DNA from: Neoechinorhynchus agilis
Lineage: Eukaryota > Animalia > Acanthocephala
Direction of reading: 5' to 3'
Assembly (NCBI GenBank): GCA_051530055.1
Contig: CM121341.1
Location: forward strand, 5,062,784-5,126,783
DNA length: 64,000 nt
The notes beneath the pieces were generated by a model that was not told where the DNA came from, made no database searches, and worked only from the letters and a program-made list of their open reading frames with translations. A program made the translations under genes and the position numbers. This document shows, one piece after another, positions 26,779 to 63,560 of the stretch. Numbering within the stretch: the first letter of the stretch is position 1; every line of letters starts with the position of its first letter.

Positions 26779-26899
26779 TTTTGTCTCATCTTTGACGATT
26801 GAATTATTCTGATGTTTTCATGTGCGGTGTATAAAAGAATTCTTAAAATTTTTTTATGCACCACAGATGAAAAACTTGCTCCCCGTGTCCCGTTTTCAC

Positions 26900-39209: not shown

Positions 39210-39904
39210 TTAAGTATCCAGTAATGATCTAACAAGCCTTCTCATTTCATTTAGACTGGTTTTTTCATCTTTGTGATCGTTATGCCAATCTCGTTTTGGA
39301 ACCTTTTCGGTCTTAACTTCTCCATCTTGTTCGAACCAACCGAGCTGCTTGATAACTAAAAAAGCGGATTGTTCGTCATTTGGACGTAATCGATTGAACT
39401 TACATTTTTGGCCATCATCAACCGATATTCCGAGATATTCGGAAATTTTGTTAACGGAAAAACTAAGTTCGTCTTCTTTAAGCCTCGATAAAAACCGTTC
39501 TCTGTATGTGTCTAAGAAGATTTCTAAAAAAACCATAGAACAGAAAGCATCTCACCCTTCAGTAAAGTACTACTACTTTGAATCGAATTAATAATTTCTA
39601 ATGAACCCAAGAAATCAGCCAAAGCCCATTTTTTTCCAAATTCGTTTAATCTGTTCAACACATCGTCCCCGATTCTCTTTTTTAGCATTGCGAAATTACC
39701 ACTCAAAGAAATGAAGTTATTCTATTTTGCTAAAAGCAAAATTTAAACCTATTCTCAGTGAGTATACACAAAACTCCCAATTCAAATTGTTCCATTTCGC
39801 TAAGATCGTCCTGTTGAGGCTACCGAACAAACTTTTTATAACGTCAATCAAACCGTCAAATACTTCATCTCGAGCTCATCGATACGTTCTGCGACGTTCG
39901 ACAT
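39210..39904 (-). CDS. COPS8: COP9 signalosome subunit 8-like, left-arm copy
   Basis: Mirror of 48062-48756 with the same length and splice sites. Confidence 0.7.
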
Positions 39905-41066
39905 CTACAAAGCGTGATATAGACTTATTTTTTCGCCAAGAACCACGATTTTAACGGTCAGAATCGTCAAAAATTCACTTTTGATCGTTTGGACACGCGC
40001 TACCATCTATGGAATAAGTTAAAAATTGTGTTTTTCGATTGAGGATTCCATATTGGAAACCTAGCCGTCACAATTCAGTTATCCCTGTAATAACTTTTCT
40101 GACATCTCTTGTTTAAAATTATGGCTAAATGTTTGAAGCATTGGATCTTAACGGGTTTCAGAGTGCCCTGTAAAAGTTTCGAGGAATTTACTTCAATTTT
40201 ATTTGACTTTAAATGAAAATCAAAGTTTAGTGTCTTGAAAGTGGACGTCCGGGAGACGCCGATTCATGTTCCCAATAACTTTTTACCCCACATGAACCTT
40301 TGCGAATCGAACGGCAAGCGTCCGGGTGGTTTGGGAGTTTTTCCCTCGGTCCGACGGAAATGGCCCATCGGCCAAATCGAACGCCAATATTGCGAAGAAT
40401 GACCCGGTCCATAGATTTCAACGTTTTCCTCCTTTAGAGCGGAGACCGGCGATGAAATTCAATAGCGAAATCTTAAGCCCTACGAAGATTATCACGAAGG
40501 ATCTTCGCTCGGCAGCATTTCTCCAGAATATTAGAAATCCGGCGAGAATAGCTTTTGGGGATGATTGCGGAGCTGAATTTAGTGATTTTTTTGAGAAATA
40601 AAATTTTAAGTGATTGGAAATAAGTCTCATGGTTAAATCGTGAATATTATGAATTATTGCAATTTTTTCCAATTCGCCTGTTTTGTTCGTTAGGAAGTTG
40701 TTCAACAGATTTGGAAAATCTAAGGTCTTTCAAACCCCGTGAAGTCAAATATTTTTATTGAAGAATCAGCGATTCATGAAGCAATAGAGGATAAAGATGT
40801 TTCTACAGTGTGCCCAGAGAATAAGTGTAAAAAATTGAATAAAACATTTTCTATTAAACCTAAAGATATTCCCTCGAAATGCAGAAATTACAAAGAAATG
40901 ATTCATTTCCATCTCGAAAACAATTGACTGAACAAAGCCAACGAAAAGGTCGAAAATTTTCAAGATAAATCTCTTTTCATAATCAAACATCGCTAATTTA
41001 AACTTAAACAGAAATTGCAAGCTAGTGACCGATACACCTTCAAGGTCAAAAGAACGCCAAACTTGT

Positions 41067-42582
41067 TTAATTTTGGGAAGGCGGCGAATCATTCGGCTCC
41101 GTTCGTTGCGGGTTGCAATCTAGGCTTTGAACAGCGCTTTTTGCTATTTTAGAAGGACGATCGTCGCTTGGTAGTGGACGCTTCTTTTCTTGCGTTGTTT
41201 CCTGGACACTTGAGTCAGTATTTAGTTGCGATGTTTGATTGGATATCGTAGCTCTTAAATCTGATTGGTTTGTGGGAACTGTGGCCGGAACGTTACCACG
41301 AGACCACCGATATGGAGGGAATCGATACGAGTTCTTGTTGAAAATCTTCGTCCTAAAAGGTATCTAGCAATTTTTTCTCAACGTTTGGGCTAATTTAGCT
41401 GGATCGTTTTGAAGTTGCTCTGTAGTCAAAGTCACTGGATCTGGTGGATCTTGATTATTCTTGGCAAGAGATTGTTCAAGGTGCTGATCAGTATCTAGAT
41501 TTCCACTAAGTTCGGCAGTTATTGGTCTCTTCGTAATGGTCGAGGTCGTAGAGGAATCATTGATCTTTGAATTGGGATAATGGCGATCGGGTGGAGGAGA
41601 TCGTAATTGGCGATCAGGCTCATGCGTACTTGGTGGATATCGCGTCAAAATCGGTCCTGATGGATTTGGTATTCGTACCGGTTCAACGAATTGGCTATCA
41701 GCCATTACCGATGTGAATGCAGGAGTGGTCTGAGCTACTGGATATTGAATATTGGGAGCGAATTGTCTTCTATAATGGCTGTCGGACCCATTTCTGCGAT
41801 TACCAATGACCTCAATATTCGGTATTCTTGATGCGGTACCAGCTTCAATATGTGGACGTTTCGCCATCAAAGTCCCACATCGTGCAGCATTTTCGTAGTT
41901 CGATCGCTTCATTGAATTGATCGGCTCATTTGGTCGAACGAATTCAGAGTTCGGTACCATCGAAGCGGGCTGTATGGTTCGCATATTGTAATTAACAGGA
42001 ATTGGTTTTTGCTCGACAGCATTACGTTGAAAGTTGACTGGAAATTCATTTGTGGATCTGGTACAACAGAACGCTGTAGATTCCTTATTGGAAGGAATCG
42101 GACACCTGAGTGCTTGTCTGATTGATTCATCGATTTTATATTGTTTTGGTGCAGGAGCTGTAGCTCGTTTCTTAGATTTTGAAGCTCCGCCCTCATCAGG
42201 AAGCGGAACTTCTACAGCCGCTTTAAATTTTCGTTCAGCACCCACCTCCTCGTCTGGTGCTCTGGTTCCGACGATTTTTTGGTTACGTGATTTTGGTTTT
42301 TCGTTTATTGCTTCCTGAATTTTATCCACCACCTCGCAGTAATCTGCGGATTGATCACTTACTGCATTCGCCAGCAAATTTCTCAAAGTACGCAGCAAAA
42401 TGGAACCGCGCACATCACTCTTCGAAATGTCTCGTTTCATCATCTCTTCAAGGAGTTTCCTCAGCAATCGCGGCATCCGTAACTCGGTATCCACAGGTGA
42501 CATTAATCCTCAAAGTGGCCAGGAGATCGCTCATTGGAGCAGTTTTAAATGCTGATTCATTGTACGTTATTTTACTTACCAT
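41067..42582 (-). pseudogene. Orphan family B, copy 1; several indels versus the intact copy
   Basis: Indels at about 41370, 42330-42360 and 42460 break the frame relative to 45380-46897. Confidence 0.75.
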
Positions 42583-42864
42583 TTTTCTGTTAAAATGATC
42601 CATTGCCCGTTTGATCGTCGACGGTAAAGGACAACCTTAACGGGAGAGGGGGTCCGTGAACCGTGAAATCGGTTGATAAATCAATGAAAAAAAACAAAGA
42701 GATCTTTGGGCAACTAATGGAGAAATCGACCTTGCTATTAGGAATAAATAATGAGCCAAAATAAAGGGTGATAATATTTTCGTGCTTCATATCAGATAAA
42801 CATTCTGAAAACATCTTTAATACCGAGAATTTGGCTGATTTTAAGGTCGCCAGTTGTTTTCCAT

Positions 42865-44278
42865 TAGGCCAAATAACAAACAGATTTAATAGGCGAAACT
42901 GTTGTTCAAAATACAAAATAACAAACAACATTTGCAACGAAAAAACCGATTATGGTTGCGGTGAGCGGTTGAAAAGAGACAAAGAAACACAGCGATAAGA
43001 GAAAGCAATGATGTCTCAAACTAAATGCAAAGAATCTCCAGTAAAGAAAACTACCCTTGAGGATTTATTTACCGCCCTGAAACTAAATGCAGATGAGATG
43101 TTTGTTATAAGAAATGAAGAAATGGCTGAGAAACTCATTCGAGAAATACTCAAAAGGAATATCACAGCTTCTGATATAAAGGAATTGGATATCGAATATT
43201 TTATAAGAAGGCTCAGTGCTGATGACGAGAGCGACGATCTTCTTGATTTGATAATAGAATTGTTAAATCGTATTGAAGAAGTGTTAGACGAAAGAGAGAA
43301 AGGTTTCTCCAGCCCGGATATTTGCATAAAACAAACGGAGAGTAAGGAGATAACGACCTCGGAGCTCAGGAAAAACGATACAGGGAGCATTTTAGAAGAA
43401 GCGATCGAGATTCCACTTCCTGATGAAGAGGAATCATTTGAAGAGTTCCTAAGAAATTCCTTCGAATACTTGCGTCCGGGTGAAATTGCTATGCAGAATT
43501 CCGCGTTTAAAATTAGTGCACCACGGCAAAGTTCCATTGATGATTTCAACGGAATTCGAATGATCCGTAGTCCAAAAGATCGAATGGCATCATCAGGGCC
43601 GAGAGATAAAAGAGAAATGGCTCAAAAGCGTCAATGTCCATTAAACACGAAGTTTCCAGATATTAGAACTTTGCCAGTGAAGCGTCCTCATATTGAATCG
43701 TTCATAAACTGTGAGGATCAAATGATTCCTAATTGGTTAAATCCATTAACCTTCCCAGAATCCAATAGTCGGTGTTCAAGGTCAAAACCGACTCAATTAT
43801 CGGCAACGAACATTGATTCCACCAATCGAAGACTTTTGCATGGAACCAAAACGTCCATCAACGGACGAGGAATGCCCGTCAAATGGTTCCAAGCATCGTA
43901 TCCTGAATGCGGACGTCAATGAACAAACAACACCGAAATTGGCATTGCTTCCATTTGTAATTGATGGAGAAATTGTGTATTTGTGATCCTTGTTAGAAAT
44001 TTAGAAAAGTTTTCTTAATTTTAAAGAAGTGAACTTTGTTTCATTTTTTAATGTGTATCGGAAATATAGCTAATTTTTTTGAATTGTCGTCATTTATTGT
44101 TGTTAGCTTCAAATGAGCGCCGCAGTCATCATTACGCTGCCAACATTCAGTTTTGTAGAAATCTTTTAAGCAACTTTGAGAAAGTCGTAAAAGTTTGGAC
44201 TTCCGAAATCAATCGGATTCAATTAGTTCAAAATTTAGCCCATATAAAAAATGAGCACGAACAATTCAATGTTTAAAC
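42865..44278. repeat. Direct repeat (about 1.41 kb) of 37678-39090 inside the palindrome spacer
   Basis: Match from ttaggccaaataac to caatgtttaaac. Confidence 0.92.
43008..43986 (+). pseudogene. Orphan family A, copy 2; one-base insertion at about 43850 alters the C-terminus
   Basis: Nearly identical to copy 3 up to LLHGTK, then shifts (ggaaccaaaacg versus ggaaccaaacg). Confidence 0.7.
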
Positions 44279-45379
44279 CTATAATGGACGTTTCAAGAGT
44301 TTAAATAGTAGAAAATTTACACGAAACTTTGAGAAAATCGTACAAGACTCTCCGAAATATCGGATTCAATAGCCGTTAAAGAGCTCGATAATTCAAATTT
44401 GTTGGTTTGGTCTTCGTTCGATAGAGAACGTTTTATTGGAGAAATTCACTGGTATCGGTACTTCGCATATCGATATTTTGAAAATAATCGATGATTCACT
44501 TCAAAAAAGGTGTTTTGAGCTTATAATTCTAAAAAATGAAGAGGATTGTCATTCATTTTTGGTATGTCATAGAGAGAATATCCTTCTGGATGATAAAGTT
44601 TGAATTGTGGTGATGATAATCCTCTGGTTAAAAGATATTTTATTGGTTCGCCAGAAAGCTTCATATCATTAGTCATTGTTAAAGTATTGCGAAATAACAT
44701 CGGGATCAATGGCGATAGCAGTGAAGCAAACGAGAAACTTCTAAAATATAGAAAGCTATCCATAGATTTCAACTTTTTCCTCCTTTAGAGCGGAGACCGG
44801 CGATGAAATTCATTGGTGAGATCTTGAGGCTTTTGAGGATTATCACGATCGCTCGGCAGCATTTCTCCAGAATATTAGAAATCCAGCGAGAAAATGCAGT
44901 CAGCTTTTGGGGATGACTGCGGTGCTGACTTGATTCTTTTTCCAGAATCAATATTTTTTAATATGGCAAAAAATAAAACGTATTTAGAAATTTATTAAAA
45001 TCTTAGAGAACTGACATTAATTGATGCTTCAATTCAGCTGAGAAAATATCAATCAACCATTAAAAATCGGGCGAATTATTTAATTTCAAGTTTCTCGCGC
45101 TTAAGAATTTAACGACCTTAAAATCAGCCAAATTCTCGGTATTAAAGATGTTTTCAGAATGTTTATCTGATATGAAGCACGAAAATATTATCACCCTTTA
45201 TTTGGGCTCATTATTTATTCCTAATAACAAGGTCGATTTCTCCATTAGTTGCCCAAAGATCTCTTTGTTTTTTTTCATTGATTTATCAACCGATTTCACG
45301 GTTCACGGACCCCCTCTCCCGTTAAGGTTGTCCTTTACCGTCGACGATCAAACGGGCAATGGATCATTTTAACAGAAAA

Positions 45380-46897
45380 ATGGTAAGTAAAATAACGTAC
45401 AATGAATCAGCATTTAAAACTGCTCCAATGAGCGATCTCCTGGCCACTTTGAGGATTAATGTCACCTGTGGATACCGAGTTACGGATACCGCGATTGCTG
45501 AGAAACTCCTTGAAGAGATGATGAAACGAGACATTTCGAAGAGTGATGTGCGCGGTTCCATTTTGCTGCGTACTTTGAGAAATTTGCTGGCGAATGCAGT
45601 AAGTGATCCAATCCGCAGATTACTGCGAGAATTGGTGGATAAAATTCAGGAAGCAATAAACGAAAAACCAAAATCACGTAACCAAAAAATCGTCGGAACC
45701 AGAGCACCAGACGAGGAGGTGGGTGCTGAACGAAAATTGAAAGCGGCTGTAGAAGTTCCGCTTCCTGATGAGGGCGGAGCTTCAAAATCTAAGAAACGAG
45801 CTACAGCTCCTGCGCCAAAACAATATAAAATCGATGAATCAATCAGACAAGCACTCAGGTGTCCGATTCCTTCCAATAAGGAATCTACAGCGTTCTGTTG
45901 TACCAGATCCACAAATGAATTTCCAGTCAACTTTCAACGTAATGCTGTCGAGCAAAAACCAATTCCTGTTAATTACAATATGCGAACCATACAGCCCGCT
46001 TCGATGGTACCGAACTCTGAATTCGTTCGACCAAATGAGCCGATCAATTCAATGAAGCGATCGAACTACGAAAATGCTGCACGATGTGGGACTTTGATGG
46101 CGAAACGTCCACATATTGAAGCTGGTACCGCATCAAGAATACCGAATATTGAGGTCATTGGTAATCCCAGAAATGGGTCCGACAGCCATTATAGAAGACA
46201 ATTCGCTCCCAATATTCAATATCCAGTAGCTCAGACCACTCCTGCATTCACATCGGTAATGGCTGATAGCCAATTCGTTGAACCGGTACGAATACCAAAT
46301 CCATCAGGACCGATTTTGACGCGATATCCACCAAGTACGCATGAGCCTGATCGCCAATTACGATCTCCTCCACCCGATCGCCATTATCCCAATTCAAAGA
46401 TCATCGAATCCTCTACGACCTCGACCATTACGAAGAGACCAATAACTGCCGAACTTAGTGGAAATCTAGATACTGATCAGCACCTTGAACAATCTCTTGC
46501 CAAGAATAATCAAGATCCACCAGATCCAGTGACTTTGACTACAGAGCAACTTCAAAACGATCCAGCTAAATTAGCCCAAACGTTGAGAAAAATTGCTAGA
46601 TACCTTTTAGGACGAGAGATTTTCAACAAGAACTCGTATCGATTCCCTCCATATCGGTGGTCTCGTGGTAACGTTCCGGCCACAGTTCCCACAAACCAAT
46701 CAGATTTAAGAGCTACGATATCCAATCAAACATCGCAACTAAATACTGACTCAAGTGTCCAGGAAACAACGCAAGAAAAGAAGCGTCCACTACCAAGCGA
46801 CGATCGTCCTTCTAAAATAGCAAAAAGCGCTGTTCAAAGCCTAGATTGCAACCCGCAACGAACGGAGCCGAATGATTCGCCGCCTTCCCAAAATTAA
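45380..46897 (+). CDS. Orphan family B, intact (about 505 aa): N-terminal helical domain plus a long P/S/T/N-rich disordered tail
   Basis: Uninterrupted 512-codon ORF. Confidence 0.8.
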   Translation: MVSKITYNESAFKTAPMSDLLATLRINVTCGYRVTDTAIAEKLLEEMMKRDISKSDVRGSILLRTLRNLLANAVSDPIRRLLRELVDKIQEAINEKPKSRNQKIVGTRAPDEEVGAERKLKAAVEVPLPDEGGASKSKKRATAPAPKQYKIDESIRQALRCPIPSNKESTAFCCTRSTNEFPVNFQRNAVEQKPIPVNYNMRTIQPASMVPNSEFVRPNEPINSMKRSNYENAARCGTLMAKRPHIEAGTASRIPNIEVIGNPRNGSDSHYRRQFAPNIQYPVAQTTPAFTSVMADSQFVEPVRIPNPSGPILTRYPPSTHEPDRQLRSPPPDRHYPNSKIIESSTTSTITKRPITAELSGNLDTDQHLEQSLAKNNQDPPDPVTLTTEQLQNDPAKLAQTLRKIARYLLGREIFNKNSYRFPPYRWSRGNVPATVPTNQSDLRATISNQTSQLNTDSSVQETTQEKKRPLPSDDRPSKIAKSAVQSLDCNPQRTEPNDSPPSQN

Positions 46898-48061
46898 ACA
46901 AGTTTGGCGTTCTTTTGACCTTGAAGGTGTATCGGTCACTAGCTTGCAATTTCTGTTTAAGTTTAAATTAGCGATGTTTGATTATGAAAAGAGATTTATC
47001 TTGAAAATTTTCGACCTTTTCGTTGGCTTTGTTCAGTCAATTGTTTTCGAGATGGAAATGAATCATTTCTTTGTAATTTCTGCATTTCGAGGGAATATCT
47101 TTAGGTTTAATAGAAAATGTTTTATTCAATTTTTTACACTTATTCTCTGGGCACACTGTAGAAACATCTTTATCCTCTATTGCTTCATGAATCGCTGATT
47201 CTTCAATAAAAATATTTGACTTCACGGGGTTTGAAAGACCTTAGATTTTCCAAATCTGTTGAACAACTTCCTAACGAACAAAACAGGCGAATTGGAAAAA
47301 ATTGCAATAATTCATAATATTCACGATTTAACCATGAGACGTATTTCCAATCACTTAAAATTTTATTTCTCAAAAAAATCACTAAATTCAGCGCCGCAAT
47401 CATCCCCAAAAGCTATTCTCGCCGGATTTCTAATATTCTGGAGAAATGCTGCCGAGCGAAGATCCTTCGTGATAATCCTCGTAGGGCTTAAGATTTCGCT
47501 ATTGAATTTCATCGCCGGTCTCCGCTCTAAAGGAGGAAAACGTTGAAATCTATGGACCGGGTCATTCTTCGCAATATTGGCGTTCGATTTGGCCGATGGG
47601 CCATTTCCGTCGGACCGAGGGAAAAACTCCCAAACCACCCGGACGCTTGCCGTTCGATTCGCAAAGGTTCATGTGGGTTAAAAAGTTATTGGGAACATGA
47701 ATCGGCGTGTCCCGGACGTCCACTTTCAAGACACTAAACTTTGATTTTCATTTAAAGTCAAATAAAATTGAGAAAATTCCTTGAAACTTTTACCAGGAGC
47801 GCTCTCGAAACCCGTTAAGATCCAATACTTCAAACATTTAGCCATAATTTTAAACAAGAGATGTCAGAAAAGTTATTACAGGGATAACTGAATTGTGACG
47901 GCTAGGTTTCCAATATGGAATCCTCAATCGAAAAACACAATTTTTAACTTATTCCATAGATGGTAGCGCGTGTCCAAACGATCAAAAGTGAATTTTTGAC
48001 GATTCTGACCGTTAAAATCGTGGTTCTTGGCGAAAAAATAAGTCTATATCACGCTTTGTAG

Positions 48062-48756
48062 ATGTCGAACGTCGCAGAACGTATCGATGAGCTCGAGATG
48101 AAGTATTTGACGGTTTGATTGACGTTATAAAAAGTTTGTTCGGTAGCCTCAACAGGACGATCTTAGCGAAATGGAACAATTTGAATTGGGAGTTTTGTGT
48201 ATACTCACTGAGAATAGGTTTAAATTTTGCTTTTAGCAAAATAGAATAACTTCATTTCTTTGAGTGGTAATTTCGCAATGCTAAAAAAGAGAATCGGGGA
48301 CGATGTGTTGAACAGATTAAACGAATTTGGAAAAAAATGGGCTTTGGCTGATTTCTTGGGTTCATTAGAAATTATTAATTCGATTCAAAGTAGTAGTACT
48401 TTACTGAAGGGTGAGATGCTTTCTGTTCTATGGTTTTTTTAGAAATCTTCTTAGACACATACAGAGAACGGTTTTTATCGAGGCTTAAAGAAGACGAACT
48501 TAGTTTTTCCGTTAACAAAATTTCCGAATATCTCGGAATATCGGTTGATGATGGCCAAAAATGTAAGTTCAATCGATTACGTCCAAATGACGAACAATCC
48601 GCTTTTTTAGTTATCAAGCAGCTCGGTTGGTTCGAACAAGATGGAGAAGTTAAGACCGAAAAGGTTCCAAAACGAGATTGGCATAACGATCACAAAGATG
48701 AAAAAACCAGTCTAAATGAAATGAGAAGGCTTGTTAGATCATTACTGGATACTTAA
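48062..48756 (+). CDS. COPS8: COP9 signalosome subunit 8-like (PCI), about 180 aa, 5 exons with introns of about 32-48 nt
   Basis: Spliced product ..MLKKRI..FGKKWALADF..FLDTYRERFL...ISEYLGISVDDG..IKQLGW aligns by eye with CSN8 (LWKRIP..GQRIWQRDF..LRDATRRRAF..FAAFVGLPVEEA..EQGW). Confidence 0.72.
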
Positions 48757-49165
48757 GTTGCTCGATGGTTTGTGTGTGTGCGCCAAATAAGTTGACATTT
48801 CGGTATTGATTCCTTTATTCCGTCAATTTATTACCAATTCAAGGGTCAAACCGAAATGTTGAAATAATCACACGTTTAAACATTGAATTGTTCGTGCTCA
48901 TTTTTTATGTGGGCTAAATTTTAAACTAATTGAATCCGATTGATTTCGGAAGTCCAAACTTTTACGACTTTCTCAAAGTTGCTTTTAAATTTTCTACAAA
49001 ACTGAATGTTGGCAGCGTAATGATGACTGCGGCGCTCATTTGAAGCTAACAACAATAAATGACGACAATTCAAAAAAATTAGCTATATTTCCGATACACA
49101 TTAAAAAATGAAACAAAGTTCACTTCTTTAAAATTAAGAAAACTTTTCTAAATTTCTAACAAAGA

Positions 49166-50146
49166 TTACAAATACACAATTTCTCCATCAATTACAAATG
49201 GAAGCAATGCCAATTTCGGTGTTGTTTGTTCATTGACGTCCGCATTCAGGATACGATGCTTGGAACCATTTGACGGGCATTCCTCGTCCGTTGATGGACG
49301 TTTGGTTCCATGCAAAAGTCTTCGATTGGTGGAATCAATGTTCGTTGTCGATAATTGAGTCGGTTTTGACCTTGAACACCGACTATTGGATTCTGGGAAG
49401 GTTAATGGATTTAACCAATTAGGAATCATTTGATCCTCACAGTTTATGAACGATTCAATATGAGGACGCTTCACTGGCAAAGTTCTAATATCTGGAAACG
49501 TCGTGTTTAATGGACATTGACGCTTTTGAGCCATTTCTCTTTTATCTCTCGGCCCTGATGATGCCATTCGATCTTTTGGACTACGGATCATTCGAATTCC
49601 GTTGAAATCATCAATGGAACTTTGCCGTGGTGCACTAATTTTAAACGCGGAATTCTGCATAGCAATTTCACCCGGACGCAAGTATTCGAAGGAATTTCTT
49701 AGGAACTCTTCAAATGATTCCTCTTCATCATCAGGAAGTGGAATCTCGATCGCTTCTTCTAAAATGCTCCCTGTATCGTTTTTCCTGAGCTCCGAGGTCG
49801 TTATCTCCTTACTCTCCGTTTGTTTTATGCAAATATCCGGGCTGGATAAACCTTTCTCTCTTTCGTCTAACACTTCTTCAATACGATTTAACAATTCTAT
49901 TATCAAATCAAGAAGATCGTCGCTCTCGTCATCAGCACTGAGCCTTCTTATAAAATATTCGATATCCAATTCCTTTATATCAGAAGCTGTGATATTCCTT
50001 TTGAGTATTTCTCGAATGAGTTTCTCAGCCATTTCTTCATTTCTTATAACAAACATCTCATCTGCATTTAGTTTCAGGGCGGTAAATAAATCCTCAAGGG
50101 TAGTTTTCTTTACTGGAGATTCTTTGCATTTAGTTTGAGACATCAT
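49166..50146 (-). CDS. Orphan family A, intact (326 aa)
   Basis: Uninterrupted ORF: helical N-terminus, acidic patch, disordered tail. Confidence 0.8.
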   Translation of the reverse strand: MMSQTKCKESPVKKTTLEDLFTALKLNADEMFVIRNEEMAEKLIREILKRNITASDIKELDIEYFIRRLSADDESDDLLDLIIELLNRIEEVLDEREKGLSSPDICIKQTESKEITTSELRKNDTGSILEEAIEIPLPDDEEESFEEFLRNSFEYLRPGEIAMQNSAFKISAPRQSSIDDFNGIRMIRSPKDRMASSGPRDKREMAQKRQCPLNTTFPDIRTLPVKRPHIESFINCEDQMIPNWLNPLTFPESNSRCSRSKPTQLSTTNIDSTNRRLLHGTKRPSTDEECPSNGSKHRILNADVNEQTTPKLALLPFVIDGEIVYL

Positions 50147-51633
50147 TGCTTTCTCTTATCGCTGTGTTTCTTTGTCTCTTTTCAACCGCTCACCGCAACC
50201 ATAATCGGTTTTTTCGTTGCAAATGTTGTTTGTTATTTTGTATTTTGAACAACAGTTTCGCCTATTAAATCTGTTTGTTATTTGGCCTAATCGAAAACAA
50301 GTGAGATAATTAGTGAGACTTTAAGAACTCTCAGTTTTCGATTAATCGGAGCGAGTTTCTATGTTGAACCGAAAAAATCAACGTTCCAATGACCCATTCA
50401 AAAATAACGAGAAAAACGTTTTTGAGAACATTAAATCAAATAATTTAATAAATTTTATGATCCAGGTCGCGTCATTTACTCGCTTAATCCTCAATACTTT
50501 TAAAATAAGGCTGCATATCGATTTTGGACATTAATAATCTTCAGAGAATATATTTCGGGATGATAGAATTATATTTGAAATATTGGGCTCGAGTGCGCTC
50601 GGGATCGCTATACCCGAAGTTCAGCGAAAATGTATCCGTTCCTTGCGTTTTCCATTGATTTTTAACACGTCGCTGGTCCTCAGAGCGCATATTTCTGCTC
50701 TTTGGTTCTTCTTTCAAAATTGTTTGTTTGGCCTACGTAGGATTTAATGCATTCGCTGCAGGGAATTATGTTAATCTCGTTTCTTAACCAAGGATCTTAA
50801 TGATTTAGCATTCGTCGTTTAGATACAACACTCGAGGTTTTTTGTGGGCAGCTCTATTAATCAGATTGTTAATTGCAGTGAATAAATCATCATCGACGAA
50901 ATGGTGCACCCGAGGAGGAGGTGTTCTTCATCAATAATTTTCCTTCCTTCATCGGGGTATTTCGTCCCCTTTTCGCCATGAGTCATCGGTTATTGTGGAT
51001 TTTAAACTCTTTGACCCACTCCAAACAGGGATTCTTGCCCAAAGTCCACTATACCATCTCTAAACAACTTTATAAAATGCACAAACTGTTCCATTTTTTC
51101 AGTTTAATCCAATTATTTAATTATTTTTAAGTTTTTAAGCGTTGAAGTGAACATTGCTTACACGGCTGATTTCTTGGCCACAACACAATCAAACCGATAT
51201 CTTGGATCAACCAATCTTTTCGCGTCATTTCTGTTTAAACCGACCGGTCCAACGATTATTAGTTATTCCATCAAATTGTTCCTTCGAGTTGATCTGTATT
51301 CTCCATGTCGAATTGTTACACACTCGAACTTTATTATTGAACTCTTCATTGCGAATTTCTAAGACTTCAGCCTCCTTCTCAAGCATTGTTTTGGGAGGAA
51401 AAATACAAGAAAGCTTTGTGTTATCGAAAAAGTTCTTTAATTACGAGAATAGATATTGATTTATTAATTCCCAATATTTCGTCTGTTTCGTCGGACGTCT
51501 TCAGGTTCCTGGTAAAAAAACTAAATATCTATTAAAATATATAAATTACACTCGAGATTCAAAAATAAGAAAAAAAGGTTTAATAAACATTTAAAGTCTG
51601 TGGTGAATATACTCGCCCGGTTAACGATTCTAC

Positions 51634-52358: not shown

Positions 52359-54407
52359 ATGACGTTTCAGTTGGGAAAAACAACGTTCTGCCACGCGTCC
52401 ATCGGTTTGTGTCGTCGTCTGTGTCCATGGCAGAGAATCCTGATTTGTTTGGTGATTGTTTCGTTGATTTCGGCTCCTTTTTTTCATTGGTCCAAAAATT
52501 CCTGGTCACTTTTGAGGATAAGCCACATTCAGAACTTTCACGAATCTTATCAAACTCACAAGAAAACTAGTGCCTTTCAGCTCCATTCGACGTTATTTGG
52601 TTCATTGACCACTGAACAAAGTAAACTTTGCGGCTTTCCATCATCGTGAGTATCCTTTTCCCCATACTGCGCTTTTTCGAACAAAATTTACATAATTTAA
52701 ATTGATAATGATTGTATTTTGTTCGAAAAAGCTGTTTTTTGCACGAAATATTTTTGAAATTCCTTTTATTCTCGTTTCTCCGGTCAGGGGTTCGATTCCT
52801 TCAAAGACCATTTATTCTAAAATTGTTCTTTTAAAGTGGAATCATTCTTCTTGAATGAAAACGTGAATACTTTCACGATTTTTAATAGTGAAAACAACAC
52901 GTCTTTGAGATTCCTTTTATTCGTTTGCCAGGTCAGGGGTTCGATTCCTTCAAAGACCATTTAATCTAAAATTGTTCTTTGAAAGTGGAATCATTTTTCT
53001 TGAATGAAAACGTGAATACTTTCACCCTTTTTAATAGTGAAAACAACACGTCTTTGAGATTCCTTTTATTCGTTTGCCAGGTCAGGGGTTCGATTCCTTC
53101 AAAGACCATTTAATCTAAAATTGTCCTTTAAAAGTGGAATCATTTTTCTTGAATGAAAGCGTGAATACTTTCACCCTTTTTAATAGTGAAAGAAGAACAC
53201 GTTTTTGAGATTCCTTTTATTCGTTTGCCCGGTCAGGGGTTCGATTCCTTCAAAGACCATTTATTCTAAAATTGTTCTTTAAAAGTGGAATCATTTTTCT
53301 TGAATGAAAACGTGAATACTTTCACGATTTTTAATAGTGAAAACAACACGTCTTTGAGATTCCTTTTATTCGTTTGCCAGGTCATGGGTTCGATTCCTTC
53401 AAAGACCATTTATTCTAAAATTGTTCTTTAAAAGTGGAATCATTTTTCTTGAATGAAAACGTGAATACTTTCACCCTTTTTAATAGTGAAAACAACACGT
53501 TTTTGAGATTCCTTTTATTCGTTTGCCAGGTCAGGGGTTCGATTCCTTCAAAGACCATTTATTCTAAAATTGTTCTTTAAAAGTGGAATCATTTTTCTTG
53601 AATGAAAACGTGAATACTTTCACGATTTTTAATAGTGAAAACAACACGTCTTTGAGATTCCTTTTATTCGTTTGCCAGGTCAGGGGTTCGATTCCTTCAA
53701 AGACCATTTATTCTAAAATTGTCCTTTAAAAGTGGAATCATTTTTCTTGAATGAAAACGTGAATACTTTCACCCTTTTTAATAGTGAAAGAACAACACGT
53801 TTTTGAGATTCCTTTTATTCGTTTGCCAGGTCAGGGGTTCGATTCCTTCAAAGACCATTTATTCTAAAATTGTCCTTTAAAAGTGGAATCATTTTTCTTG
53901 AATGAAAACGTGAATACTTTCACCCTTTTTAATAGTGAAAACAACACGTCTTTGAGATTCCTTTTATTCGTTTGCCAGGTCAGGGGTTCGATTCCTTCAA
54001 AGACCATTTATTCTAAAATTGTTCTTTAAAAGTGGAATCATTTTTCTTGAATGAAAACGTGAATACTTTCACGATTTTTAATAGTGAAAACAACACGTCT
54101 TTGAGATTCCTTTTATTCGTTTGCCAGGTCAGGGGTTCGATTCCTTCAAAGACCATTTATTCTAAAATTGTCCTTTAAAAGTGGAATCATTTTTCTTGAA
54201 TGAAAACGTGAATACTTTCACCCTTTTTAATAGTGAAAGAAGAACACGTTTTTGAGATTCCTTTTATTCGTTTGTCCTGTGTTCAGTTTTCAAACTACTC
54301 CAATGAATTCTAGTCCAAGTTCTAAAAGATTTCCTCATTTTCCCGACCGAGCAGTCAAAAGAGTTCAACGTAACTTTAGTGGGCCTCATAAGAATCTTTC
54401 ATTGTGA
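52359..54407 (+). CDS. Predicted two-exon small type-II membrane protein (52359-52645 + 54287-54407, about 135 aa)
   Basis: TM segment ILICLVIVSLISAPFF; GTGAGT donor at 52646 (phase 2) and TTCAG acceptor at 54286 give an open second exon. No recognised family. Confidence 0.35.
52770..54274 (+). repeat. Tandem repeat, 149-bp unit, 10 copies, each with a tRNA T-arm/B-box (AGGTCAGGGGTTCGATTCC)
   Basis: TTCGATTCC at about 52791, 52940, 53089 ... 54135. Confidence 0.95.
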
Positions 54408-54436: not shown

Positions 54437-56253
54437 ATGCAGCAAGATTCTGCGCCGAATCATTCCGCTAATTATGGAAAAATTAAGGTATATACATTGA
54501 AGTGGACTTAAGATAAATCTTCATTTTCTAAAACAGGAATATCTATGGAATCATAAACTTGAATGTTTTCAATTCGTTCTTCGTATTGCTTGTGTTTTCC
54601 ATGCATTTCGATTTATGTTCATGTTCGGATACCCAATTGAAAGACGAAAATTCTACAGGCGTTCATTGCGTATGGCTGGTGCAGTATCTTTGATTCGCTT
54701 AAAAGTACGATTTCTCGTTTCGATCGAGAAATCGTGCTATAAACCAACGATTGCAAGAATCACCTCGTCCTCAAGGCGCAACTTTGGACTTTATGGCATT
54801 GTTTAAAAGAATGTTCGTGGAAGACAGCTTTCACTACGTTATATATTCGTTAATGATGAGCGCATACCCTACTTCGTTGACCGTCGCACTCGTCCCCATC
54901 ACGATATTCGCAATCGTACAATCACTTCAATGGCTACTTACCATTGTCAGATTGTCCGAAAGTGACCGTTCGTCACATGATCACTCCGATTTGTTCAACA
55001 AAACTACTGCCGCCCAAAACGTTCTAAAATCACGGCAATCCATTGCGTTCGAACTCGCTGCATTCGGTGAAATATTCTTACTGCTAGCGCTCGCTATGGA
55101 CTTGGCCGTAAGGTCAGTAAAATGTTCGCGAATTTGATATGGTTTGGTCAGATCATAGGTAAAAATGTTAATCCCCGAAAACATCCTAGAGGAAATGGAC
55201 GATAATAATAAAGGAATCTTGAACCGGGATTATGCTCACCATTAAAAGTTTCGATTTTTTATCATCGGTAAAGAAAATCCTTCAGGGTAATCAAAGTTTA
55301 TACTTTTGGTGAAAATAATCAACCGGCCACCCACAAAGATATTTGATTTGTAGGGAAAATATTTCGCGAACACCTAAATTTCGCCTCTATAAAAATCAAG
55401 GGAAAAAGTAGTCTGAGCTTCGGGTTTGGCGATCCCGAGCGCCCTCACCCATTTTTAGATAGGTTACCTTCTCGCGAAATATTTCCCCTACAAATCAAAT
55501 ATCTTTGTGGGTGGCCGGTTGATTATTTTCACCAAAAGTTCACTAATTTATCCATAGAAAATCCTTCAGGTTAATCAAAGTTTATACTTTTTGGTGAAAA
55601 TCACAAAGACATTTGATTTATAGAGGAAATATTTCGCTAGGAGCTAAGCTGCATATGGATTTTGGGCATTAATCATCGACAGAGAAAATCCTTCGGGATG
55701 ATTTATAGAGGAAATATTTCGCTCGGAGTTAAACTTCGTCTCTATAAAAATCAAGGAAAAAAGTAGTCTGAACTTTCGGTTTAACTAATCCCGAGCGCCC
55801 TGGAGCATAAAATCTTAATATGTAAAACCCATTGAAGAGGGCAGGTTACCTCCTCACTTTTCCCCCATAAATCAAATATGCGATGACCGGGGGATTATTT
55901 AGATTCTTTTATTAATTTCGCGTCGGTTTAATTGCAAAATTTAAACAATAAAACATTCTCTACCGTTTGAAGACCAAACCAACAAATTTACGACCAATTT
56001 TTAAACCGAAATCAAGTTTTTCTTTTAATTTAGGCGTCCTGGTATTTTGATGACAATCACGTTTCTTAGCTCCTACCTTCAATTCCTCAAACTGCGTTAC
56101 CGTTCAATGAGAAATCGGTACACCCGCGATGTGTTCGCGAAACTCAAGCACACAACTCAATGCTACACCATCCATTCTTCCACTTGCCCTGAACTGATCA
56201 AGAAAATTACTGCTTACGTCATCAATGGAATCGAAGCCATGTCTGCTCTATGA
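54437..56253 (+). CDS. TMEM33: TMEM33/Pom33; exons about 54437-54487, 54537-54704, 54745-55112, 56034-56253
   Basis: FYRRSL, LIRL.QRL, EDSFHYVIYSL, LVPITIFA, FGEIFLL and FLKLRYRSMRNRYTR..CP match TMEM33. Confidence 0.88.
55300..55542. mobile_element. Foldback/MITE-like element with inverted arms of about 70 bp in TMEM33 intron 3
   Basis: acttttggtgaaaataatcaaccggccacccacaaagatatttgatttgtaggg..tcgcga versus its reverse complement at 55472-55542. Confidence 0.75.
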
Positions 56254-56564
56254 TTTGAGAATGTGCGCTAGTAAAGTAACGATAATTTTATTTGGAGCGT
56301 CTCGCCTTATCAATCATTGTTTTCGATTTACAAAGTTTACTTGAATTTAAAAAGAAAAGTTCCGATAAATATCGCTCATCGAACGTCTATGGACGTGTAA
56401 AAAAAGATGAGCGTAAATAATCAGTGGCGTTTTTGGGGTGCTGTTTAATAAAAGTTTTAAAATGCACCTTCGTTCCAGTCACGACAATTAATCTCGTTAT
56501 TCATCAAGAGAAAATCATCCGGGATAGCTTTTAGTTATTAAAAAACATCCATGCAACTGCTCTG

Positions 56565-56925
56565 GATGATGTAACGGTCAAAAGGACGGATTCAGCGTTC
56601 CAACAATGTTCCTGTCCTCGGATCATCTGAGTCTCTTGGACAATTGATTGATCAGCTTCCTTGCAACGGTACAAAACGATCTGAATGTCTCATTGCCAAA
56701 GGGAACGAAATAATGATTTCTAATCTTTTCGGGATCCTCAAAGGTGGTCACTGCTCCCATTGTCAGGTTTAACAACGGCGAATTTTATGTTGGTGGCTGC
56801 TCGCCGAGGAAACATTCTGACACCGTCCGGTCTATCGCCATCGATCGAGTCGGCAAAAATAGATTGACTCTAGGATGTTCTTTTCGAATTCCCAGTATTC
56901 TGGGCACGACTGAGAGAATCGCGTA
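56565..56925 (-). mobile_element. Decayed CRE remnant; near-identical inverted copy of 24479-24833
   Basis: Mirrored ORFs 24415-24660 and 56744-56926; only a few substitutions by eye. Confidence 0.85.
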
Positions 56926-57439
56926 ACCGTCAACTTTCCCACCCTCCAGAACTCGGGATCCACTCCAAAATCAACAGCCACATTCATTTTTACCTATCAG
57001 TAATCGCACTTCCCTATACCTCCGCTCCTTTTTCTATGCTGCCCAATCTTCTTGGATGTCGAGACCGGAAATGAACCTGAGGAGAGACCCAACCTCAGAA
57101 ACTCCCCAGAAAACAATAACCGTCAACTTTCCCAACACCGCCCGAACTCGGGATCCACTCCAAAATCAACAGCCATATCCGCTCCTTTTTCCAAACTGAC
57201 CAAAAAATTAAACGACTGAGCTCTTCAAATTCCGTTTTTTTTTCGATCAGGTCTCTTAGCTGTAACGTTTTGTATTTTTAGACGAATTCTTATATAATAT
57301 TCTGCGTACATTTCGGCCCAGAGAAACCGATATCGTTTGAGATTCGCGAAAAGACGACACCTATTGTTTATTAGGTTCGACCGTTTTGGTCATGAGAGAA
57401 CAAACAGTCACACACACGCACACTAATCTCCGAGACAGC

Positions 57440-57901
57440 CTAGAATCGCTCTCCTCGAATGCGGCGAGCGAGCTGTATGTCCTTGGGCATGATCGTAACG
57501 CGTTTTGCATGGATCGCGCATAGATTGGTGTCCTCGAACAAAGAGACAAGATAAGCTTCAGCAGCTTCCTGTAGAGCTCCAATAGCCGCAGACTGGAATC
57601 GCAAGTCCGTCTTGAAGTCCTGAGCGATTTCTCGTACTAGTCGTTGGAACGGCAGCTTTCGAATCAATAGTTCGGTCGATTTCTGGTAGCGTCTAATCTC
57701 ACGCAATGCAACCGTTCCTGGGCGGAACCTATGGGGTTTCTTTTGTCCTGCAGCTCCAGATACACCTGCACCACCACCACCACCAGCGGGACCACCTATC
57801 GCACCGCCCGGTGCTGTTTTACGAGCTGCTTTAGTGGCTAGCTGCTTCCTAGGGGCCTTTCCACCCGTCGACTTCTTCGCAGTTTGCTTAGTTCGAGCCA
57901 T
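57440..57901 (-). CDS. H3: Histone H3.3-like variant with a 17-aa Gly/Ala-rich tail insertion
   Basis: Canonical histone fold with the H3.3 AAIG motif; tail ..[39 protein letters not shown]; 153 aa. Confidence 0.95.
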
Positions 57902-58340
57902 GTGTCTGAAATGAGAGACGGAAGAATTCCACGCAAGTTCCGATTGAAGAGAGCAGCGCTACGAGCGGGGGAGATTGGATGAAAACGAACGAACGAACGA
58001 ACGGGTCTATATAGTGCCGAAGATCGGAAAGAATTCCAGTGTACAATGTTACACACACACACAATCCAAACGCTCACAGGATTCTGTAATGGAGGAAGAC
58101 CTGCCGTCCCAGTGACGTCACATGACAAATTTAGGATCAAATGACGCGAGCGCGCGGAATTTCCATGTCGGCGCACTGTTTAGCGAAAAATTAAGGGGTT
58201 TCGAAATGGGGATTTTTCAACCGACAACATAGAAAGTCACGAAATACGACGACGACGTAATCAAAGCCACAAAATAGAAAAAAAGAAGATCGTTTGCCAG
58301 TGTGTCGGTAAACGAAATTTTAAAAATGCGAGTCGGTGCG

Positions 58341-60262
58341 TTACGTCACAAAATTTGGCGATGAAATCCGGGGTGAAAAGAAAGAGATTTTTCTCCGTTT
58401 ATAAGCGGATCGATTATTGATGACGCATTTTTCTTCGATTTCATTACGTCACAAAATTTGGCGATGAAATTCGGGGTGAAAAGAAAGAGATTTTTCTCCG
58501 TTTATAAGCGGATCGATTATTGATGACGCATTTTTTTTGGATTTCGTTACGTCACAAAATTTGGCGATGAAATTCGGGGTGAAAAGAAAGAGATTTTTCT
58601 CCGTTTATAAGCGGATCGATTATTGATGACGCATTTTTCTTCGATTTCGTTACGTCACAAAATTTGGCGATGAAATTTGGGGTGAAAAGAAAGATTTTTC
58701 TCCGTTTATAAGCGGATCGATTATTGATGACGCATTTTTTTTGGATTTCGTTACGTCACAAAATTTGGCGATGAAATTTGGGGTGAAAAGAAAGAGATTT
58801 TTCTCCGTTTATAAGCGGATCGATTATTGATGACGCATTTTTCTTCGATTTCGTTACGTCACAAAATTTGGCGATGAAATTTGGGGTGAAAAGAAAGAGA
58901 TTTTTCTCCGTTTATAAGCGGATCGATTATTGATGACGCATTTTTTTTGGATTTCGTTACGTCACAAAATTTGGCGATGAAATTCGGGTGAAAAGAAAGA
59001 GATTTTTCTCCGTTTATAAGCGGATCGATTATTGATGACGCATTTTTTTTGGATTTCGTTACGTCACAAAATTTGGCGATGAAATTCGGGGAAAAGAAAG
59101 AGATTTTTCTCCGTTTATAAGCGGATCGATTATTGATGACGCATTTTTCTTCGATTTCATTACGTCACAAAATTTGGCGATGAAATTCGGGGAAAAGAAA
59201 GAGATTTTTCTCCGTTTATAAGCGGATCGATTATTGATGACGCATTTTTCTTCGATTTCGTTACGTCACAAAATTCGGCGATGAAATTCGGGGAAAAGAA
59301 AGAGATTTTTCTCCGTTTATAAGCGGATCGATTATTGATGACGCATTTTTTTTGGATTTCGTTACGTCACTAAATTTGGCGATGAAATTCGGGTGAAAAG
59401 AAAGAGATTTTTCTCCGTTTATAAGCGGATCGATTATTGATGACGCATTTTTCTTCGATTTCGTTACGTCACAAAATTTGGCGATGAAATTCGGGGAAAA
59501 GAAAGAGATTTTTCTCCGTTTATAAGCGGATCGATTATTGATGACGCATTTTTTTTGGATTTCGTTACGTCACAAAATTCGGCGATGAAATTTGGGGTGA
59601 AAAGAAAGAGATTTTTCTCCGTTTATAAGCGGATCGATTATTGATGACGCATTTTTCTTGGATTTCGTTACGTCACTAAATTCGGCGATGAAATTTGGGG
59701 TGAAAAGAAAGATTTTTCTCCGTTTATAAGCGGATCGATTATTGATGACGCATTTTTTTGGATTTCGTTACGTCACAAAATTCGGCGATGAAATTTGGGG
59801 TGAAAAGAAAGAGATTTTTCTCCGTTTATAAGCGGATCGATTATTGATGACGCATTTTTTTTGATTTCGTTACGTCACAAAATTTGGCGATGAAATTTGG
59901 GGTGAAAAGAAAGAGATTTTTCTCCGTTTATAAGCGGATCGATTATTGATGACGCATTTTTTTTGGATTTCGTTACGTCACAAAATTTGGCGATGAAATT
60001 CGGGGTGAAAAGAAAGAGATTTTTCTCCGTTTATAAGCGGATCGATTATTGATGACGCATTTTTTTTGGATTTCATTACGTCACAAAATTTTGCGATGAA
60101 ATTTGGGGTGAAAAGAAAGAGACTTTTCTCCGTTTATAAGCGGATCGATTATTGATGACGCATTTTTTTTGGATTTCGTTACGTCACAAAATTCGGCGAT
60201 GAAATTTGGGTGAAAAGAGGGTGATTTTTCTCCGTTTATAAGCGGATCGATTATTGATGACT
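58341..60262. repeat. Tandem repeat, about 103-bp unit, about 19 copies
   Basis: ttacgtcacaaaatttggcgatg...tgatgacgcattt recurs at 58341, 58444, etc. Confidence 0.95.
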
Positions 60263-61084: not shown

Positions 61085-63560
61085 AAAAAGCAAAAAAAAC
61101 CAATCCCTTTGGAGAATATTGGAAATCCGAGGAGGTATTAGAACCTACGCAAAAATAATTCGTCTTTTTCCCGTTCTAAAAACGCTTAGAGAGAAAATAC
61201 TTCCATTTTTGATTGATTTCTTAAATTTCGTCGGATAATCGTTCTATATTTTTAAGCAAAAAACCCAATCCCTTTGGAGAATATTGGAAATCCGAGGGGT
61301 ATTAGAACCTACGCAAAAATAAATCGTCTTTTTCCCGTTCTAAAAACGCTTAGAGAGAAAATACTTCCATTTTATTGATTTCTTAAATTTCGTCGGATAA
61401 TCATTCTATATTTTTAAGCAAAAAACCCAATCCCTTTGGAGAATATTGGAAATCCGAGGAGGTATTAGAACCTACGCAAAAATAAATCGTCTTTTTCCCG
61501 TTCTAAAAACGCTTAGAGAGAAAATACTTCCATTTTTGATTGATTTCTTAAATTTCGTCGGATAATCGTTCTATATTTTTAAGCAAAAAAACCCAATCCC
61601 TTTGGAGAATATTGGAAATCCGAGAGGTATTAGAACCTACGCAAAAATAATGTCTTTTTCCCGTTCTAAAAACTTAGAGAGAAAATACTTCCATTTTGAT
61701 TGATTTCTTAAATTTCGTCGGATAATCGTTCTATATTTTTAAGCAAAAACCCAATCCCTTTGGAGAATATTGAAATCCGAGGATATTAGAACCTACGCAA
61801 AAATAAATCGTCTTTTTCCGTTCTAAAAACGCTTAGAGAGAAAATACTTCCATTTTTGATTGATTTCTTAAATTTCGTCGGATAATCGTTCTATATTTTT
61901 AAGCAAAAAACCCAATCCCTTTGGAGAATATTGGAAATCCGAGGAGGTATTAGAACCTACGCAAAAATAATTCGTCTTTTTCCCGTTCTAAAACGCTTAG
62001 AGAGAAATACTTCCATTTTTGATTGATTTCTTAAATGTCGGATAATCGTTCTATATTTTTAAGCAAAAAACCCAATCCCTTTGGAGAATATTGGAAATCC
62101 GAGGAGGTATTAGAACCTACGCAAAATAATTCGTCTTTTTCCCGTTCTAAAAACGCTTAGAGAGAAAATACTTCCATTTTTGATTGATTTCTTAAATTTC
62201 GTCGGATAATCGTTCTATATTTTTAAGCAAAAAACCCATCCCTTTGGAGAATATTGAAACCGAGGAGGTATTAGAACCTACGCAAAAATAAATCGCTTTT
62301 TCCCGTTCTAACGCTTAGAGAGAAAATACTTCCTTGATTGATTTTAAATTTCGTCGGATAATCGTTCTATATTTTTAAGCAAAAAACCCAATCCCTTTGG
62401 AGAATATTGAAATCCGAGGAGGTATTAGAACCTACGCAAAAATAAATCGTCTTTTTCCCGTTCTAAAAACGCTTAGAGAGAAAATACTTCCATTTTTGAT
62501 TGATTTCTTAAATTTCGTCGGATAATCGTTCTATATTTTTAAGCAAAAAAACCCAATCCCTTTGGAGAATATTGGAAATCCGAGGAGGTATTAGAACCTA
62601 CGCAAAAATAAATCGTCTTTTTCCCGTTCTAAAAACGCTTAGAGAGAAAATACTTCCATTTTTGATTGATTTCTTAAATTTCGTCGGATAATCGTTCTAT
62701 ATTTTTAAGCAAAAAAACCCAATCCCTTTGGAGAATATTGGAAATCCGAGGAGGTATTAGAACCTACGCAAAAATAAATCGTCTTTTTCCCGTTCTAAAA
62801 ACGCTTAGAGAGAAAATACTTCCATTTTTGATTGATTTCTTAAATTTCGTCGGATAATCGTTCTATATTTTTAAGCAAAAAAACCCAATCCCTTTGGAGA
62901 ATATTGGAAATCCGAGGAGGTATTAGAACCTACGCAAAAATAAATCGTCTTTTTCCCGTTCTAAAAACGCTTAGAGAGAAAATACTTCCATTTTTGATTG
63001 ATTTCTTAAATTTCGTCGGATAATCGTTCTATATTTTTAAGCAAAAAAACCCAATCCCTTTGGAGAATATTGGAAATCCGAGGAGGTATTAGAACCTACG
63101 CAAAAATAAATCGTCTTTTTCCCGTTCTAAAAACGCTTAGAGAGAAAATACTTCCATTTTTGATTGATTTCTTAAATTTCGTCGGATAATCGTTCTATAT
63201 TTTTAAGCAAAAAAACCCAATCCCTTTGGAGAATATTGGAAATCCGAGGAGGTATTAGAACCTACGCAAAAATAATTCGTCTTTTTCCCGTTCTAAAAAC
63301 GCTTAGAGAGAAAATACTTCCATTTTTGATTGATTTCTTAAATTTCGTCGGATAATCATTCTATATTTTTAAGCAAAAAAACCCAATCCCTTTGGAGAAT
63401 ATTGGAAATCCGAGGAGGTATTAGAACCTACGCAAAAATAAATCGTCTTTTTCCCGTTCTAAAAACGCTTAGAGAGAAAATACTTCCATTTTTGATTGAT
63501 TTCTTAAATTTCGTCGGATAATCGTTCCATATTTTTAATCAAAAAAAAACAATCCGAGGA
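61085..63560. repeat. Tandem repeat, about 166-bp unit, about 15 copies
   Basis: aaaaaacccaatccctttggagaatattggaaatccgagg... recurs; middle copies have many single-base deletions. Confidence 0.95.

Follow-up and report, generated by a model that had tools for sequence, protein, structure and literature searches.

We analysed a 64-kb window (64,000 nucleotides) of a 19.4-Mb chromosome in assembly GCA_051530055.1 of Neoechinorhynchus agilis, an acanthocephalan (thorny-headed worm) parasitic in fish. A single uninterrupted open reading frame (ORF), running on the reverse strand from an ATG at 57901-57899 to a TAG stop at 57442-57440, is, judged by its sequence, an intact gene for an H3.3-type histone. 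The features of this ORF are listed below.

57440-57901, reverse strand: complete coding sequence (CDS), 153 aa plus TAG, of the H3.3-type histone; corresponds to residues 4-156 of the annotated protein ACOME3_001084
57578-57589, reverse strand: AAIG codons, the H3.3 signature in helix alpha-2 (canonical positions 87-90; ORF residues 105-108)
57743-57808, reverse strand: insert of 66 nt coding for 22 residues instead of STGGV, a net gain of 17 residues; GC 0.64, GC3 0.14
57769-57785, reverse strand: perfect trinucleotide microsatellite within the insert, (GGT)5.7 on the coding strand
57869-57880, reverse strand: A-K-K-S codons, with R8K in the K9 context; unique among 315 retrieved H3s

The ORF product was 100% identical to ACOME3_001084 (156 aa), except that the annotated N. 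agilis protein carries three extra N-terminal residues, MLH. Human H3.3, compared with the 64-kb window by tblastn, found this ORF as its sole match (82% identity over 152 aa); with an E value of 5e-76, the similarity is therefore not due to chance. No second histone gene was detected within the window by the same search. The product also matched the core histone family in Pfam (PF00125, E=2.4e-47), and its best matches in PDB were H3.3 chains (237 bits). HMMER alignments to these chains contained one gap of 17 residues, located between APST and GGVKKPHR. With the 17 residues taken out, 126 of 136 alignable positions were the same as in human H3.3, and the ten differences were R8K, S28T, S31G, T32A, G33A, V35Q, Y41F, S96A, G102S and A135F. 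The protein differs from H3.2 at 13 positions and from H3.3 at 10, because positions 87-90 read AAIG. Only three changes from H3.3 were found within fold positions 44-135 (n=92), and the tail keeps K4, K9, K14, K18, K23, K27, A29-P30, G34, K36-K37 and P38-H39.

An earlier note on this DNA had described a canonical histone fold with the H3.3 AAIG motif and had concluded that the protein is not CENP-A. The first claim was borne out by the PF00125 assignment, the H3.3 matches in PDB and AAIG at ORF residues 105-108. The second also held: the fold hardly departs from that of H3.3, loop 1 carries no insertion, and the tail, apart from the insert, is canonical. Thus, a centromeric H3 (CENP-A/cenH3), which would have a divergent fold (about 50% identity to H3), an extended loop 1 and a tail of unrelated sequence, was rejected. 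A replication-dependent H3.1/H3.2 was rejected as well, with AAIG instead of SAVM at positions 87-90 and no 3' stem-loop found. R8K, S28T, Y41F and the 22 residues in place of the usual five, all reported in the same note, are present in the alignments; it had not listed T32A, G33A and V35Q beside K36 (with G34 kept), S96A, G102S or the C-terminal A135F.

The insert consists of 12 Gly, 5 Ala and one residue each of Ile, Pro, Val, Ser and Gln, and it increases the distance from K27 to K36 from the canonical 9 residues to 26. It replaces positions 31-35, and S31 of animal H3.3 is not clearly retained; its one serine lies 6 residues before K36, compared with 5 residues for canonical S31. The perfect (GGT)5.7 tract is surrounded by GGT, GGC, GGA, GCT, GCA, GCG, GTA and TCT codons, most of which differ from GGT by one or two changes.

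The flanks of the CDS contain several elements relevant to the mode of expression.

57367-57372, reverse strand: AATAAA polyadenylation signal, starting 68 nt past the stop codon
57906-58225, reverse strand: 320-nt intron of the deposited gene model, GTCGGT...TCATTTCAG; reconstructed, and containing the next two motifs
58008-58013, reverse strand: TATATA box, 112 nt 5' of the ATG
58113-58120, reverse strand: palindromic CRE-like motif TGACGTCA, 219 nt 5' of the ATG
58226-58230, reverse strand: 5-nt first coding exon of the deposited model, ATGTT; reconstructed

An Rfam scan of positions 55000-60000 showed no match to the histone 3' stem-loop (RF00032) at E<=1. The genes neighbouring the histone gene code for a TMEM33-like protein, a BAF-like protein and an aldo-keto reductase. 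A solitary gene with AATAAA and no stem-loop fits a polyadenylated replacement-histone gene, not a member of a replication-dependent cluster, and the features of the gene thus point to polyadenylated, replication-independent expression. The genome of N. agilis was annotated by BRAKER2 guided by mRNA-seq reads (PMC12690905). We reconstructed the exon/intron layout of the deposited model from its gene range and product length. The resulting 320-nt intron may be either a real 5' UTR intron or a prediction artefact. If the 5-nt first exon reflects a predictor accommodating a 5' UTR intron, spliced reads, and hence expression, would be implied. On the other hand, as both the TATA and CRE-like motifs fall inside the intron of the model, either the promoter lies directly upstream of the CDS and the intron is artefactual, or the motifs are fortuitous. 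Also, 4 nt upstream of the histone ATG is the end of a strong splice-acceptor-like site, TCTCTCATTTCAG (57902-57920, reverse strand), which the deposited model takes as a cis-acceptor; a spliced-leader acceptor is another possibility, because trans-splicing occurs in rotifers. A literature search returned nothing specific on trans-splicing in acanthocephalans. An exact-sequence look-up of the 153-aa product in transcript-derived collections was negative, and only the genome-derived 156-aa model was recorded. Histones are not mentioned in the main text of the N. agilis genome paper, and one of its supplements has no entries for them (PMC12690905).

To place the insert among known histones, we used 315 retrieved H3s and defined the K27-K36 spacing as the number of residues between the two lysines. 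The queries favour insert-bearing sequences, and the counts below therefore describe a biased sample.

Spacing 8 (canonical), 166 sequences: ordinary H3
Spacing 9-15, about 67 sequences: inserts rich in A, S, T, G and P, mostly from fungi and protists
Spacing of at least 18, the remainder: mostly translated introns or internal duplications, told by hydrophobic or junk sequence

The fungi with a spacing of 9-15 included Tremellales such as Kwoniella, other basidiomycetes, chytrids and Rozella. Several long cases looked real: P0095, from an uncultured eukaryote, reaches a spacing of 24, and four independent environmental samples each contain it as a contiguous ORF; P0082, from Phaeothamnion, has a spacing of 23 with GGIAT repeated three times; P0113 has a spacing of 19; and P0080, which is transcript-derived, a spacing of 16. 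With a spacing of 25, the worm protein was the longest low-complexity case among the 315 retrieved H3s, and the sole other real-looking animal case among them was a histone-cluster form of Caenorhabditis brenneri with two additional residues. Taken together, these sequences indicate that the P30-G33 segment is widely tolerant of insertions across eukaryotes. In P0088, P0097, P0106, P0120, P0273 and others, the stretch exactly between K27 and K36 contained a translated intron or an internal duplication, so length outliers at this place are often annotation artefacts. No similar insert was found in another species in two protein searches, which returned nothing of the kind beyond the self-hit, and no orthologue was found. 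When the first 100 aa served as query, the self-hit reached 201 bits and the next sequences 182 bits or less; the ones examined among the latter were H3 models that had been duplicated or wrongly joined. One candidate relative, P0122, shared 11 residues with the worm protein but was rejected, as its tail is unrelated; it sits on a 1.4-kb metagenome scaffold from Tara Oceans. A literature search for H3 tail insertions and for rotifer H3.3 or PRC2 found nothing specific.

The substitutions fell into two kinds. Four of them are common states among the 315 sequences: S28T was present in 66, Y41F in 98, S96A in 83 and G102S in 43, and S28T and Y41F are usual in fungal, plant and protist H3s. In contrast, R8K, Q before K36 and the C-terminal F each occurred once among the 315, in this protein only. 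This uniqueness could equally be read as relaxed constraint. A bias of substitutions towards the tail was rejected as evidence: the Fisher test gave p=0.012 when four changes tied to the insert were counted as independent and p=0.36 without them, and its significance thus hangs on these four changes.

We consider the best account of these data to be a real, intact, stand-alone H3.3-type gene with a translated, lineage-specific insert of 17 Gly/Ala-rich residues that most likely came from slippage, and we give this reading a probability of about 0.58. The perfect (GGT)5.7 core amid degenerate GGT/GCT-like codons makes replication slippage the likely origin. The insert would have arisen stepwise, with GGT-like triplets slipping in the P30-G33 segment and the older units diverging since. 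A perfect microsatellite implies a recent, perhaps polymorphic, change of length, and the young GGT core may still vary in length. Because the P30-G33 segment is a general H3 hotspot of low-complexity length variation, a near-neutral product of slippage is no less likely than an adaptive variant that uncouples K27 from K36.

A less favourable view of the gene is that it is a drifting paralogue, i.e. a recent copy of a normal H3.3, made by retroposition or duplication, that is weakly expressed or unexpressed and on its way to a pseudogene, with the insert as a neutral microsatellite expansion. The CDS is intronless, as expected of a retrocopy; the gene is solitary and has satellites and transposable elements on its flanks, and the perfect repeat, the three otherwise unseen states at near-invariant positions (R8K, Q35 and the C-terminal F) and the failure of protein searches to find an orthologue are all consistent with this possibility. 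Moreover, H3 genes are dispersed across all chromosomes in Acanthocephalus anguillae (PMC10592040). However, the ORF is intact and nearly unchanged over the 92 fold positions; the TATA, CRE-like and AATAAA motifs are in place; the locus was called as a gene by the RNA-seq-guided annotation (PMC12690905); and the degenerate codons on either side of the perfect core suggest an insert of some age. Similarly, we found no retrocopy signature, either as a target-site duplication flanking the gene or as a poly(A) remnant after AATAAA. We regard decay of this kind as unlikely, though it deserves to be taken seriously.

The preferred reading, an expressed H3.3 with a longer tail, has predictable structural consequences. 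With this fold and AAIG, the protein would be assembled normally into nucleosomes by the H3.3 chaperone pathway (by its AAIG, of the HIRA or DAXX type). The composition of the insert, Gly and Ala with a single Ile, Pro, Val, Ser and Gln, suggests a flexible, uncharged linker. Such a linker would add up to roughly 60 Å, and K27, together with everything N-terminal of it, would lie farther from the nucleosome core. In the structure of PRC2 on a dinucleosome, EZH2 holds H3 residues R26-K37 in an extended path, with hydrophobic hotspots at A29/P30 and V35 and with unmodified K36 at the EZH2(CXC)-DNA interface, and both K36A and K36R lower K27 methylation on nucleosomes (PMC7725500). With 17 additional residues and V35Q, the geometry of the tail on PRC2 should change. 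PRC2, which reads K27 and K36 along one stretched tail path, would probably meet a slack tail; since A29/P30 are kept, V35 becomes Q and a slack linker lies between the contacts, a weaker coupling in cis from K36 to K27 is expected. Neither the K27 mark nor the K36 mark would be expected to be lost: the coupling would be weakened and modification would not be abolished. As to the other changed part of the tail, R8 is important to K9 methyltransferases of the G9a and SUV39 types, and R8K may therefore lower K9 methylation, probably by weakening those K9 writers that depend on the R8-K9 pair.

The earlier note had gone further and proposed that the variant uncouples K27/K36 crosstalk and extends the reach of the tail. 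Taken to its end, this would be a specialised H3.3 under selection for that role, for example a germline or stage-specific form that responds differently to PRC2 and to K36 methyltransferases. Uncoupling of K27/K36 crosstalk is possible, inasmuch as it fits the published PRC2 geometry: the extended R26-K37 path, the V35 hotspot and the position of K36 at the EZH2-DNA interface (PMC7725500) all concern the stretch in which the worm alters spacing and V35. R8K changes the K9 context too, and an orphan, sex-specific replacement H3 has a precedent among fast-evolving animals in H3t.3 of Oikopleura (PMC3156773). Nevertheless, low-complexity inserts occur at the same tail segment in many lineages, and S28T and Y41F are ordinary states elsewhere. 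This makes selection for such a function improbable in our view. It is likewise doubtful, and to a similar degree, that this parasite lineage has the insert-bearing protein as its main or sole H3.3, loaded genome-wide.

The preferred reading also requires that the insert be coding and not an intron. The insert is in frame, free of stop codons and divisible by three in length, and A or T is the third letter in 19 of its 22 codons in spite of a GC content of 64%. We enumerated 44 in-frame GT/GC..AG pairs in the region. Canonical sequence was restored by none of them; one 51-nt pair (gene nt 98-148) restored the canonical length, with APGAAGQKK as the result. The statement in the earlier note that no GT..AG pair restores the canonical tail was thus correct for sequence but not for length. 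Five of the 44 pairs were checked, and these had 63-67% GC; their donors (GTGCGA, GTGGTC) were weak, and no pyrimidine tract preceded their acceptors, among them GAG. In contrast, six to eight local introns, reconstructed from neighbouring models, had 27-37% GC and T-rich 3' ends finishing in TAG or CAG; their lengths included 49, 50, 132, 142, 303 and 921 nt. Under the upper bound of local-intron composition, the GC content of the candidates had a probability of 1e-4 to 1e-5. The same note's description of the candidate introns as GC-rich and unlike local introns therefore stands, and the insert is coding-like. The GC content, missing pyrimidine tract, A/T bias at third positions and open frame make a conventional intron unlikely, and the insert is retained as coding in the BRAKER2 gene model. 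Thus, on the basis of its sequence features, the insert is probably translated.

A remaining variant of this idea is an exitron, whereby the insert, wholly or mostly, would be spliced from some or all transcripts as a GC-rich in-frame intron to leave a canonical or near-canonical tail. Exitrons tend to have a high GC content and a length in multiples of three. The supply of in-frame pairs, with a 51-nt one that gives exactly the canonical spacing, would allow this, and the shortest local introns are 49-50 nt. Also, many database H3 inserts at this place are translated fungal introns, and the tail of Oikopleura H2A.Z loses GK motifs through alternative acceptor sites (PMC3156773). However, the weak donors, the absence of a pyrimidine tract and the GC content far above that of local introns in the checked pairs, the unspliced state of the insert in the RNA-seq-guided model (PMC12690905) and the lack of any candidate that restores the canonical sequence argue against it, and we think that splicing of this kind is very unlikely. 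Finally, an assembly or consensus error that inflated the insert can practically be dismissed, since the perfect triplet repeat, although of a sequence class given to length errors, covers only 17 of 66 nt, the remainder is unique and interrupted, and such an error could account for a few residues of length but not for the insert itself.

Comparison with known systems helps to define what is unusual about the gene. Few animal proteins are as conserved as H3.3. Like canonical metazoan H3.3 (human H3-3A/B, Drosophila His3.3A/B), the worm protein has 126 of 136 positions in common, AAIG and the major tail lysines, and its gene is solitary, with a polyadenylation signal and no stem-loop; unlike it, the protein has 17 more residues between P30 and K36, in addition to its substitutions. 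Even in the fast-evolving Oikopleura, H3.3 is still 100% identical to vertebrate H3.3 (PMC3156773).

Fungal and protist H3s (Kwoniella/Tremellales P0103, P0104 and P0256, together with P0082, P0095 and P0080) carry inserts at the same site, after A29-P30 and before G33-G34. These inserts resemble that of the worm in their G/A/S/T/P composition, in being in frame and in lying in contiguous ORFs, and some have clear repeat units. They are mostly of one to seven residues, with a maximum of 16, and keep GGV, whereas the worm has 17 and altered residues next to K36. By descent, the insert-bearing H3s of fungi and protists are unrelated to the worm gene.

With regard to replacement variants, H3t.3 of Oikopleura is a lineage-specific orphan replacement H3 with sex-specific expression (PMC3156773). 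The PDB matches of the worm protein included mouse H3mm7 and H3mm15. Human H3.5, H3.Y and the mouse H3mm series are other lineage-specific replacement H3s. All these resemble the worm gene in being orphans derived from H3 or H3.3, without a conserved stem-loop and with a few lineage-specific substitutions. They differ from the canonical form by substitutions alone; a tail insertion, present in the worm, is absent from the descriptions compared. From its sequence, the worm gene is best classed as a lineage-specific replacement H3 variant, which is a known category, and the long tail insertion is its distinguishing change.

Another group of H3 forms is altered along the K27/K36 axis, namely the oncohistones H3.3 G34R/V/W and K36M and plant H3.10 and H3.15. 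These share with the worm protein a change near K27-K36 that could alter the action of PRC2 or K36 methyltransferases in cis. They carry single substitutions at K27, G34, K36 or the flanking residues, whereas the main change in the worm is one of spacing. Also, in contrast to these forms, the worm protein keeps K27, A29, P30, G34, K36, K37 and P38.

The K27-K36 segment is a meeting place of Polycomb silencing and transcription-coupled K36 methylation, and cancer-driving H3.3 mutations cluster there. For an animal H3.3 the insertion is unusual: it has analogues in fungi and protists, and none comparable was found among the animal sequences retrieved. If the protein were the main or only H3.3, N. 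agilis would have animal chromatin in which K27 and K36 are 26 residues apart and the K9 context is changed. Machinery for PRC2, K36 and K9 methylation that has co-evolved or become relaxed would then be implied, and the lineage would amount to a natural experiment on the flexibility of K27-K36 spacing, with crosstalk rewired in a parasite. If the gene were instead a drifting paralogue or a product of slippage, it would show that this segment of the animal H3 tail tolerates a low-complexity insertion, as it does in fungi and protists. In addition, an animal H3.3 with a long flexible spacer between K27 and K36 would be a ready-made reagent for asking whether PRC2 senses K36 through a fixed geometry.

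Several other features of the window were observed. A 103-bp satellite occupies 58339-60261 (18.8 tandem copies, 96% matches) and starts about 440 bp 5' of the histone ATG; each unit contains ACGTCA and TGACGCA motifs resembling half-CREs. Four more satellite arrays were detected by self-comparison, at 16078-17610, 25858-26782, 52751-54274 and 61088-63555, which makes this stretch of the chromosome unusually satellite-rich. On the 3' side of the histone gene, 56943-57203 contains a tandem duplication of roughly 195 bp, with blocks of 41 and 26 nt at 93% and 85% identity; as both copies are on one side of the gene, it is not a target-site duplication. A near-perfect hairpin at 55302-55539, 2 kb from the histone gene, has 68-nt arms (99% complementary) and a 102-nt loop, with related copies at 55602-55879. 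It gave sub-threshold Rfam matches to the plant miRNA families MIR2670 and MIR4208; rather than a miRNA gene, it is probably an inverted-repeat element of the MITE type.

A large palindrome is formed by a 5.8-kb inverted duplication (37058-42849 versus 45113-50910, 99.4% identity), whose spacer contains a third copy of 1.4 kb (42851-44278). It includes paralogous ORFs of unassigned function at 38060-38800, 43008-43922 and 49166-50146, and at 41364-42503 and 45359-46897. Judged from translations, a reverse-transcriptase-like ORF of 544 aa lies at 2507-4141 (reverse strand) and a broken LTR-retrotransposon-like pol at 6637-9633 (reverse strand), with protease, RT, RNase H and integrase in separate ORFs. 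The latter element is flanked, one on each side, by two paralogous ORFs with a divergent forkhead-like domain (4400-4900 and 10517-10987, both reverse strand; 92% DNA identity over 410 bp). Finally, 27119-29062 on the forward strand contains an intronless HSP70 gene coding for 647 aa, with a C-terminal (GGMP)4 and EEVD.
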